In this document: one piece after another, positions 14,424-17,900 of the stretch
Layout of the letters: every line of letters starts with the position of its first letter
How positions within the stretch are numbered: the first letter of the stretch is position 1
Source: Octopus sinensis
Lineage: Eukaryota
Reading direction: 5' to 3'
Length of the DNA: 64,000 nt
NCBI RefSeq assembly: GCF_006345805.1
Contig: NC_043004.1
Coordinates: 81,468,001 to 81,532,000, forward strand
Made by a program: the position numbers and the translations under genes
The notes under the pieces: model-generated
What the model was told of the DNA's origin: nothing
Seen by the model: the letters and a program-made list of their open reading frames with translations, nothing else
Database searches by the model: none

Positions 14424-14843
14424 ACAAACATAAATAGATGGGTGTGAAGACATGGAAAGATAACATGAAGATACATACAGCCATAGCTTCTGTTGTAGGT
14501 TGGTAAAACGTGTTGGAAAACTAACAACAAGAGAAGAAACAGTTCGCTTCAAATATCCCTGTCCTTGAACTTAATTAATCAATCACCATTAATAACTTTG
14601 TATGGCATATTTTCCTTTTTTTATTATATTCACAGTCTTAACTCGGTGGTATTCAATAAAGTGTGACAACTAACCTTTGTGTTGATAAAGATAATGAAAT
14701 TCAAGATAACGATTATCATTCGTTAAAAGAATAATCTTCATTAAAATAGAAGCACGATTTAGGTCATACACTGAATATTAGAGAAATAAATTTGACAAGA
14801 AGACCATTTGAGACATCGTTGTCTTAGTTTATATGAAGGCAAA

Positions 14844-14924
14844 ATGGAAGCAACAATCACTGGATATTCTTTACACGATGTTAGGTTCCCCACGTCGCTA
14901 GAATTGCATGGTTCCGATGCAATG
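14844..14924 (+). CDS. ENOSF1: ENOSF1-A exon 1 ([27 protein letters not shown])
   Basis: ATG in CAAAATGG context; donor GTAAGT; 81 nt, phase 0. Confidence 0.92.
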
Positions 14925-17900
14925 GTAAGTGTTTTATTTGGTATTCCACCACGAAAATATTTCATAGTCTTCCGTTAAAATGTTATTTTGATAGAAATAT
15001 CTTTTTAAACAGTCTCCTTAATTTGATATACATTTCAAAGAAAGCTTTTCTTGTCCTGGAATTTAGTGAGAGTTTAAAATCAGGAATCTGAAATAACCAA
15101 TCTCATTTCAATATTATTTTATATATGTGTGTGTGTGTGTGTATGTATATATGTATATATATATGTGTATATATATATATATATATATTATATATATATA
15201 TATATATATATATAAAACTGAGAATGTGTGTCTGTCTGTGTGTTTCCTTAAAATTTGAGAACTACACAACCAATTTCATTCAAATTTTACACATGCCTTA
15301 CTTATGGTCCGGGGAGTGTCATCGGAGAAAATTTTTTAACTTTTTGCCTAGGGCAAGCCCACAGCAATATCATATCTTCTCCACTATGATTCCCTAAAAC
15401 ACGAGAACAACACAAGCAATTTCATTCAAATTTTACACATGCCTTACTTAGGGTCCATGTGGTTTCATGGGCAAAAAAATTGTTCAACTTCTTGCCTAGG
15501 GCGAGCCCATAGCAATATCATATCTTCTCCACTATTTCAGTATTACGTGTTAAAAGTGAAACAAAAACATTTCTCTATTTTATGTCAGATACTTTCACTT
15601 TTAAAAATAATAATAACAATTGAATTATATGTAGTAAGTAATAATTAAAATCAAACTAAAGTATAATATAATAATTAAATCGTAACATAACAATTAAAAG
15701 TAAAAATAGCAATTGGTATAAAATTGCATCAAAGATTTGAACTTGAATAAGTGGTTTCACATGAATGGGAATAAATTAAAAATAAAATTAGCATGCAGAA
15801 ATGGAATAGTTCTACAATTCCAGTCTGTTATATATTTTCAGTATTGTTATCACCAGCGATATCAAGATATAACTTTGTATTTTGTATTTTATGTGTAGAT
15901 GCATATATATAGATGTACATGTAATATGTACACATATGTATACACATATATACATGCACTAGCACTATGACCCGGCAAAGATGGGTCATAATGCTGGTAT
16001 ATATATATGTATGTATGTATATATATATATATATTATATATATATATATAATATATATATATATATATATATATGTATATATATATATATATGTGTGTGT
16101 GTGTATATAATTTCACAGTGCAACTCACTGAATGTTCTTCTTTGTCATTTATCAACTTCATCTCATTAAGGAAACTCATTAGTTTTATTGTAAATAATTG
16201 TTTCAAATTTTGGCCCAAGGCCAGCAATTTTAGGAGCTAGGTTTAGTCGATTGCATCAACCTAGTATTTTACTAGTATTTTATTTTGACAGCCATGGAGG
16301 GACAAAAGACAAAAGTGACTTCAGCAGTATTTGAACTCGGAATGTTAAAAAGCCCAAACAAATGCACCAAAGTATTTTGTCTGATGCACAACCAATTCTC
16401 ACAGCTCACCACTTTGTTTATCATGAATAATAACAATAAGATTCTATCATAATATATAAAGTTATCAACCCTTTCATTACTGTATTTCTGTTGAGATGCT
16501 CTGTGTTTCTTTCAATTAATTTAGATATAACAAAGAATTTAGTTAAATAAATTAATTACCATTAAGCTAGTGTTAGGAACATAAATTGTGACTAAGGTTT
16601 GGTGGAAGATTTTAATTCAGAACTTTTGAAAACAAGACATTTATACTACAGAACCAGGGGCGGTCTCAGCCAGGTTGGCATCAAAAGGGTTAATCACACC
16701 TCTACATTTGGGCAGATAGACATTAGAAGCAGTTGGAAGGATATGGATTGAAGGAAATTTAGGCTATCATTTCTAGCTTATAGAGTGACCACATTGAGGT
16801 CTCCTTCTCTTATGTCTTCTGCTGATTATTTTTCTTCTTAACCCTTTTGTTAACATATTTCTTAATTATCATTAAGCTAGTATTAGGATCATAAATTGTG
16901 ACTAAAGTTTGGTGGAAGATTTTAATTCAAAATTTGTGAAAACAAGACATTTGAACTACAGAGCCAGAAGCGGTTTCAGCTGGGGTGGTATCAAAAGGGT
17001 TAAGAATTGTTTCTCTATTATATATTTTAACCCTTTGGTACTGTATTTCTGTTGAGATGCTTGGTGTTTCATTCAATTAGTTTAAATATAACAAAGAATT
17101 TAGTAAATAACTTTATTACCATTAAGCTAGTGTTTTAAGAACATAAATTGTGACTAAGGTTTGGTGGAAGATTTTAATTCAAAACTTATGAAGACAAGAC
17201 ATTTGTACTACAAAGCCAAAGATGGTTTCAGGCGGGTTGGTTCTGAAAGGGTTAAGGCAGCAAGATGGCAGAATTGTTAGCATTCTGGGGAAAATGCTAT
17301 GTGGCCATTGGTCCATTGTTACAATCTGAGTTTAAAAGTCTACTGATGACAACTTTACTTTACATCTTTTCAGAGTTGATAAAATAAGTACCAGCTGAGT
17401 ACTGGGGACCAATGTGATCAACTTACCCCCCGCCCCTGAAATCACTGGCCTTGTGCCAAAATTTGAATCCAATGTAGAAAGATATTTCCTCACAAAAAAA
17501 ATTACATAATCATTATTATTGAGATAAAAATATTTGTCCTGTACCAGTCAAGAAATGGGGTCTATTTAATTTGCTAAATCCCTTCTACTCAAAAATTGTC
17601 GTCCTTGTTCTTAAATTAAATACAGCCACATGGTTCCGGCGAGTATTTAAAGGGAAATTTGGCAGGATGACCAGTCGCTCGCTGACACTCATTGACCCTG
17701 CATCGAAGAAACCAAAGAACAGAAGAAAAAACACATCGCTAAAACTACCAAGAAGGCTGAGGGTGTTTTGGCATCACTCACCAAGTCCTTTGTGAGCCAC
17801 TCTCCAGCTATCTATCTGTGGCTTTATAAAGCTATGGTACGACCTCACCTGGAATTTGCATCACTGGTCTGGAACCCCTATCTTGCCCTGGATATTAATT

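Follow-up and report, generated by a model that had tools for sequence, protein, structure and literature searches.

Concerted evolution of tandem duplicates in which divergent patches are retained is known from the primate L/M opsin genes, the gamma-globins and RHD/RHCE. Teshima and Innan are said to have developed a theory of such 'islands of divergence', and in the primate L/M opsins the island of divergence lies at the spectral-tuning sites. A related set of observations, made in yeast, Drosophila and human pedigrees, concerns discontinuous ('complex' or patchy) conversion tracts, which arise from heteroduplex mismatch repair, and also heteroduplex rejection at dense mismatches. Here we describe a tandem gene pair in octopods and compare it with these systems. 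The pair was found in a stretch of 64,000 nucleotides (nt) of Octopus sinensis sequence CM016866.1 (GCA_006345805.1; hereafter, the window), which holds two head-to-tail ENOSF1 (L-fuconate-dehydratase-like) genes, called A and B. Around exon 1 the two genes are identical except at an island of 11 nt within the region encoding the N-terminal loop. The original prediction for this DNA held that gene conversion had homogenised the flanks of the island, that the island itself had been retained, and that its retention pointed to divergent substrate preference. We find that the pair exemplifies a well-known process and is a clean but unremarkable instance of concerted evolution; the account that we think probable is that of a conversion-homogenised pair in which the island is a patch that escaped.

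The extent of the block was established by global alignment (Table 1). Upstream of the island, 84 nt of A and B match exactly, and downstream of it a further 125 nt do so (20 exonic and 105 intronic), at an offset of 40237. A pattern search with a 50-mer starting at the ATG and a 41-mer lying over the exon-1 donor returned exactly two copies of each in the window, 40237 nt apart. The intervening 11 nt hold five differences (A/B: G/T, G/T, A/T, A/G and T/A), three of which are synonymous (at T17, S18 and L19) while the other two replace residues (E20G and L21M). On all of these points, from block coordinates and bases to the lengths of the identical arms and the five substitutions, the original prediction was exact, and its structural premise was right in outline, as the island is bordered in the N-terminal loop by the invariant FPTS and GSDAM motifs.

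The sequence on either side of the block is paralogous and well diverged. In the upstream flank, 79 of 362 aligned sites are mismatched, with 56 gap columns in addition, and beyond position -34 the two promoters are only ~78% identical; in the downstream flank, 17 of 71 aligned sites are mismatched, with 15 gap columns. The proximal 65 nt of the upstream flank (14745-14809) contain only four mismatches and one indel, which suggests an older and wider tract beneath the recent one. Against such backgrounds, 209 identical nt would be expected with a probability of 3e-8 at 8% divergence and 6e-21 at 20%. The earlier estimate of about 1e-8 at ~8% divergence was thus right in placing the identity beyond chance, while the 8% background did not hold, as the adjoining flanks differ by 22-24% plus indels. 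Just past the end of the paralogous homology begins a TG/TA microsatellite (15119-15210); the mir-297-type Rfam matches found from 15119 onwards were sub-threshold (37.8 bits vs a gathering score of 90) and were rejected as low-complexity noise in this microsatellite.

A second octopod genus provided the comparison by which conversion could be judged. The tandem pair is also present in Argonauta hians, in the order A, B, ClpP (opposite strand) and with exon lengths identical to those in Octopus; in O. sinensis, too, ClpP sits downstream of the A-B pair on the opposite strand. The coding sequences of the four genes (Octopus A and B, Argonauta A and B) yielded a gap-free alignment of 1323 nt with 123 parsimony-informative sites, 100 of which are concerted, grouping paralogs by species, compared with 17 that are orthologous, grouping A with A and B with B, and six that support the third grouping. 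The orthologous sites are far from evenly spread: 12 of the 17 fall in exons 9, 15 and 16, and the ratio of orthologous to concerted sites is 12 to 4 in exons 8, 9, 15 and 16, compared with 5 to 96 elsewhere (p = 1.2e-9, Fisher's exact test). Synonymous divergence (dS) follows the same division, with paralog values of 0.11-0.14 in exons 3-6 and 10-14, vs 0.70-0.84 between species, and paralog values of 0.89-2.1 in exons 8, 9, 15 and 16. Furthermore, the derived states YTSS, YPND, S378, A383, S384 and F433 are common to Octopus A and Argonauta A, while both B genes have the state of cuttlefish, squid and gastropods. Because these A-type derived residues and the synteny with ClpP are shared by both genera, the simplest reading is that a single duplication preceded the Octopus-Argonauta split and that gene conversion has since recurred in each lineage. 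At the level of sequence comparison, these data demonstrate both conversion across the gene and the old age of the duplication, and the claim that conversion had homogenised the flanks of the island was borne out.

The fine structure of the identity agrees with what is seen in other concertedly evolving tandem duplicates, in which paralogs are closer within species than orthologs are between species over most of the gene, and in which short tracts (~100-250 bp) extend into introns with sharp edges and leave copy-specific sites between converted stretches. Exact A/B matches in O. sinensis reach 143 nt (exon 13), 125 nt, 102 nt (exon 6 with both intron flanks), 87 nt (intron 5 only) and 84 nt, and A/B identity crosses into introns and ends abruptly at exons 1, 4, 6 and 13. 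Short-tract interlocus gene conversion between A and B, repeated and independent in each lineage since a duplication that predates the split, would leave just such a mosaic, with exons 3-6, 10-14 and most of exons 1-2 homogenised, and with old copy-specific sequence in exons 8-9 and 15-16 and at scattered single sites. The pair would offer a clear and quantifiable instance of concerted evolution in a cephalopod genome, with homogenisation of a long-established tandem of enzyme genes proceeding separately in two octopod lineages, and a natural substrate for the study of tract length and of the effect of mismatch clusters on conversion. It also carries a caution for annotation and phylogenetics, in that gene trees of the A and B paralogs would falsely suggest independent recent duplications.

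A further stretch of high identity was observed in ~500 nt of intron 5 and exon 6 (25537-25833 and 26815-27045 in A, compared with 11791-12276 of the adjoining O. sinensis sequence that carries the rest of B and with 13889-14425 of the Octopus bimaculoides locus read), where the O. sinensis copies are 90-92% identical to each other, while either copy is 85-89% identical to O. bimaculoides B; an insertion of ~1 kb interrupts this block in A. The block probably marks a further conversion tract that predates the one in exon 1.

Could the identical flanks in exon 1 instead reflect an error of assembly or polishing, or contain a promoter or intron element held under strong functional constraint? 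The O. sinensis sequence was indeed read from a single assembly, and the block takes in the surroundings of the start codon as well as the 5' splice site, both of which should be under some constraint. Reads would, however, map uniquely to surroundings that differ by 22-24% with indels, and the same kind of mosaic is present in the independent assembly of the other genus, in which exon 3 of Argonauta A and B is identical at 116 of 116 nt together with 56 nt upstream. As for constraint, which was tested in Argonauta, the Octopus block aligned to both Argonauta genes in the exon alone (77-85%), with nothing detectable beyond exon 1, and the Argonauta copies themselves differ from each other in exon 1 at 14 of 81 nt and 5 of 27 residues. 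Since the exon differs in this way and the introns do not align, the Octopus flanks are not a deeply conserved element; in addition, the intronic arm matched no Rfam family and showed no unusual fold (z-score -0.8). We consider either of these origins of the identical flanks highly improbable.

The direction of the exon-1 event can be read from two codons near the start of the protein. R11 and I13 are found in Argonauta B, cuttlefish and squid, and gastropods have R or K at position 11 with I13; H11 and V13 are found in Argonauta A, Octopus A and also Octopus B. Because Octopus B carries the A-type derived residues H11 and V13, B received A-type sequence, and on these residue states conversion at codons 11-13 ran from A to B. 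The event also seems to be young. Between O. sinensis and O. bimaculoides, orthologous introns of gene B are mismatched at 5-9% of sites, while the absence of any difference in 139 non-coding nt of the block caps post-conversion divergence at ~2%, which would place the exon-1 event well after the split of these two species. The block would be the most recent tract of the pair, a stretch of ~220 bp that begins 34 nt ahead of the ATG and reaches 105 nt into intron 1, with A as donor and B as recipient in at least its 5' part.

What, then, is the island? That all five differences in 220 nt should fall within an 11-nt span has a probability of ~8e-6 (2,000,000 simulations), which excludes independent new mutations. 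The synonymous states within the island are informative when set beside Argonauta (Table 1). The third position of L19 is the sole orthology-type site in exon 1: the two A genes have CTA and the two B genes CTT. At S18 the B genes share TCT, and the A genes have TC followed by a purine. Octopus A and B disagree at every one of the island's three synonymous sites, which fits the unconverted class of exons (dS ~0.9-2) and would be unlikely for the converted class (dS ~0.14); likewise, the density of differences (5 in 11) fits the 22-24% divergence of the flanks more closely than it fits a recent origin. Taken together, these observations make it likely that the island is original copy-specific sequence that escaped A-to-B conversion, rather than a set of new mutations. 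Given such an escape, it is somewhat probable that no selection on residues 20 and 21 is needed to explain the island.

Escape could have come about in more than one way. In patchy tracts elsewhere, as here, conversion skips a short patch within an otherwise continuous stretch, at the very place where mismatches cluster. The island may be an unconverted patch left when one heteroduplex was repaired discontinuously and the cluster of five mismatches was restored as a unit, or it may lie between two tracts that each ended at the cluster. Patchy tracts elsewhere were seen directly in meiotic products, whereas the octopus event is read from one fixed sequence per species, from which a patchy tract is indistinguishable from two abutting ones. 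Patchy heteroduplex repair, two tracts stopping at the mismatch cluster and selection are thus not separated by the present data.

A quite different origin would be clean conversion of the whole 220 bp, followed in one copy by a single complex multinucleotide mutation, whether by an error-prone polymerase or from a template. Five changes within 11 nt, four of them transversions, between perfect flanks are what such an event might leave. The search for a template found none of at least 9 nt for the island on either strand to a distance of 3 kb; for its variable part, no template of 10 nt or more was present anywhere in the window. A mutation of this kind would also need to have re-created by chance the B-type TCT and CTT, or the A-type CTA, and since E20 and M21 are derived in different copies from a G-L ancestor, changes would be needed in both genes. 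Although it would account for the clustering, we give this origin little credence.

The remaining alternative is the one that the original prediction favoured, namely that each enzyme depends on an active-site lid loop of its own and that selection removes tracts that overwrite residues 20 and 21, making the island one of the opsin type. Selection would here shield a difference between an E20-L21 and a G20-M21 lid loop, and the enzymes would be starting to specialise on different sugar acids; were this so, the island would be a live record of sub- or neofunctionalisation under way inside a concertedly evolving pair. Several observations would sit well with it. The island is flanked by the two invariant motifs of the loop, it has apparently outlasted more than one conversion event, as judged from the nested identity upstream, and A and B are both intact and under purifying selection (ratio of non-synonymous to synonymous divergence, omega, 0.07-0.2). 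M21 is moreover rare, being found in 2 of 249 relatives with the motif.

The history of the residues nevertheless runs against this alternative. G20-L21 is present in a squid and in each of the two Argonauta genes, while E20 occurs only in Octopus A and M21 only in Octopus B. On this comparison E20 and M21 are separate single changes in the Octopus lineage, one per copy, with no old A/B loop difference to be maintained, and what has persisted since the duplication is the synonymous states. The claim that the island was retained is therefore upheld for the copy-specific synonymous states at L19 and S18 and is not supported for the two residues. In opsin-type cases, by comparison, what is retained is a set of replacement sites whose functional effect has been demonstrated and which are conserved across species; in the octopus island the replacement differences are lineage-specific and only the synonymous states are shared with the orthologs. 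With two replacement and three synonymous changes in five codons, the island shows no excess of replacements.

Positions 20 and 21 also vary freely among relatives, and no other part of the loop varies as much in the 249 family members, with E (87), G (29), Q (25), N (22), T (22), S (21) and others at position 20, and L (118), K (39), A (24) and others at position 21. The resemblances named in the original prediction are real: the Xanthomonas campestris FucD loop reads FPTSRELDGSDAM (RELDGSD) and that of human ENOSF1 (4a35) reads FPTSLGGHGADAM (LGGHGAD). L-fuconate is nonetheless the preferred substrate of both enzymes, with E-L in Xanthomonas and G-G in human, and their side activities are similar (PMC13406643). 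A literature search within the papers available found nothing on contacts of the '20s loop' in FucD, and a structural role for residues 20 and 21 is presumed on general grounds; the rare M21 may have a subtle effect. On the sequences compared here, the adaptive, substrate-specificity reading of the island is unproven rather than refuted and appears unlikely, as does selection as the force that preserved it, and the proposed divergence in substrate preference was not supported.

Residues that do distinguish A from B in both genera are located elsewhere. They are (A/B) V/I38, I/V55, S/T189, N/D198, L/I234, S/R378, A/V383, S/N384, V/I396 and F/S433, and these ten would be better candidates than residues 20 and 21 if a functional difference has been maintained; for biochemical divergence of this octopod L-fuconate-dehydratase-like pair, the exon-1 loop is not where to look first. 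Residues 38 and 55 are encoded in exon 2, near the second capping-domain loop, and neighbouring sites are homogenised.

Several points weigh against the island as an escaped patch. The copy-specific signal consists of two synonymous sites, for which chance agreement has a probability of roughly 0.02-0.06, and T17 is discordant with the copy-specific pattern, Octopus B having the codon of Argonauta A, and is uninformative. The island has also persisted through apparently two or more nested conversions (94% identity in the nearest 65 nt of the upstream flank), and a barrier or selection explains such nested survival more easily than one lucky repair. Finally, as exon 1 of O. bimaculoides B falls in an assembly gap, the exon-1 comparison within Octopus is that of O. 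sinensis, read at assembly level from one assembly.

The exons of both genes were located by tblastn with a human ENOSF1 sequence as query, the N-terminal part and loop of which were later checked against the 4a35 chain; one full exon set was found from 14844 on and a second from 55081 on. Gene B exons 5-16 lie past the end of the window and were read from the adjoining O. sinensis sequence. By cluster and contig look-up, the gene A translation is O. sinensis XP_029639990.1 and that of gene B is XP_029640105.2. Exon 8 of gene A is merely 39 nt long and is readily overlooked. An in-frame 5' extension of exon 9 had offered a compensating length and a plausible protein, and was ruled out by the O. 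bimaculoides protein in favour of the separate 39-nt exon.

Both proteins have the features of the ENOSF1/FucD L-fuconate dehydratases of the enolase superfamily (PDB 4a35, 1yey and 2hxt), with similarity over the full length, both Pfam domains, and the metal-binding and acid/base motifs kept. The Pfam MR_MLE_N and MR_MLE_C domains score 28.6 and 201.4 bits in A and 27.6 and 200.8 bits in B (cut-offs 22 and 29.4). Protein A aligns end to end with human ENOSF1 (4a35; E = 2.9e-190, residues 5-433) and with X. campestris FucD (1yey; E = 4.5e-161, residues 4-430), and FKAKVG, VDANQ, WIEEPT, ATGEQ and CPHAGG are present in both A and B, aligned with the same motifs of 4a35 and 1yey. According to work attributed to Yew et al. 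in 2006, these residues reportedly serve as the KxK base, the D/E/E magnesium ligands and the histidine acid. Neither the A nor the B protein reached a FucD-specific model in NCBIfam. Other animals in our searches have mostly one ENOSF1 gene or its isoforms (copy number was not systematically checked), whereas octopods have an old tandem pair, of which the octopus A copy, unlike its ENOSF1/FucD relatives, has derived residues in the C-terminal exons. The two aligned relatives, human ENOSF1 and X. campestris FucD, have solved structures and measured L-fuconate dehydratase activity (PMC13406643).

Table 1. Positions in the window of the two ENOSF1 genes and of the parts of the exon-1 block, with the island codons of the four octopod genes.
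Feature	Positions	Strand	Remarks
Gene A upstream arm: 34 nt before ATG, codons 1-16 and two bases of codon 17	14810..14893	+	84-nt exact match to B 55047-55130
Gene A island: codon 17 position 3 through codon 21 position 1	14894..14904	+	Five differences from B 55131-55141
Gene A downstream arm: last 20 nt of exon 1 and first 105 nt of intron 1	14905..15029	+	125-nt exact match to B 55142-55266
Gene B upstream arm	55047..55130	+	Identical to A 14810-14893
Gene B island (ACT TCT CTT GGA ATG)	55131..55141	+	TCT CTT as in the Argonauta B gene
Gene B downstream arm	55142..55266	+	Identical to A 14905-15029
Older paralogous 5' flank/promoter region of A	14431..14809	+	Homologous to B 54646-55046; ~22% mismatch plus indels
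Diverged paralogous intron 3' of block	15030..15115	+	Homologous to B 55267-55337; marks the sharp 3' tract edge
Gene A, complete, 16 exons, 440 aa	14844..47015	+	Translation is XP_029639990.1; Pfam MR_MLE_N and MR_MLE_C
Gene A exons 1-8	14844-14924, 20450-20552, 21620-21735, 23810-23896, 24577-24603, 26912-26952, 29803-29834, 31697-31735	+	
Gene A exons 9-16	32672-32754, 33437-33471, 35927-36014, 40470-40604, 42515-42686, 43587-43680, 45212-45293, 46908-47015	+	
Gene A exon 1, 27 codons, donor GTAAGT	14844..14924	+	Matches XP_029639990.1
Gene B exons 1-4	55081-55161, 58876-58978, 61487-61602, 62372-62458 (span 55081..62458)	+	As in XP_029640105.2
Octopus A, codons 17-21			ACG TCG CTA GAA TTG
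Octopus B, codons 17-21			ACT TCT CTT GGA ATG
Argonauta A, codons 17-21			ACT TCA CTA GGA CTG
Argonauta B, codons 17-21			ACA TCT CTT GGA CTG

At the O. bimaculoides locus (CM046608.1, ~8.39 Mb), a run of N occupies positions 5246-6737 of the locus read, where B exon 1 should be. This run accounts for the truncated RefSeq model XP_014779504.2, which starts MFLFQ inside intron 1, and for two older chimeric models, XP_014779504.1, with an unrelated N-terminus, and UniProt A0A0L8GNF1, in which C-terminal exons of A are fused to B.

Other repeats were observed in and around gene A. A perfect 95-nt direct repeat (40273-40367 and 42282-42376) lies ~100-230 nt upstream of gene A exons 12 and 13, and was not found in gene B, the Argonauta locus or the O. 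bimaculoides locus. Two reverse-transcriptase open reading frames (ORFs; Pfam RVT_1) at 10484-11671 (-) and 37120-39118 (-), the first upstream of gene A and the second within its intron 11, belong to one non-LTR (long terminal repeat) retrotransposon family and are 98.9% identical over 1.18 kb; a third copy is an inverted fragment at 17728-18283 with 78% identity. The family looks recently active. Between A and B, two 572-nt direct repeats (50516-51087 and 52531-53101) lie 2 kb apart and are 99.3% identical, and an ORF with a zf-RVT domain (52204-52677) begins between them and extends into the second. A recent tandem duplication would account for these repeats, as would a terminal-repeat element.

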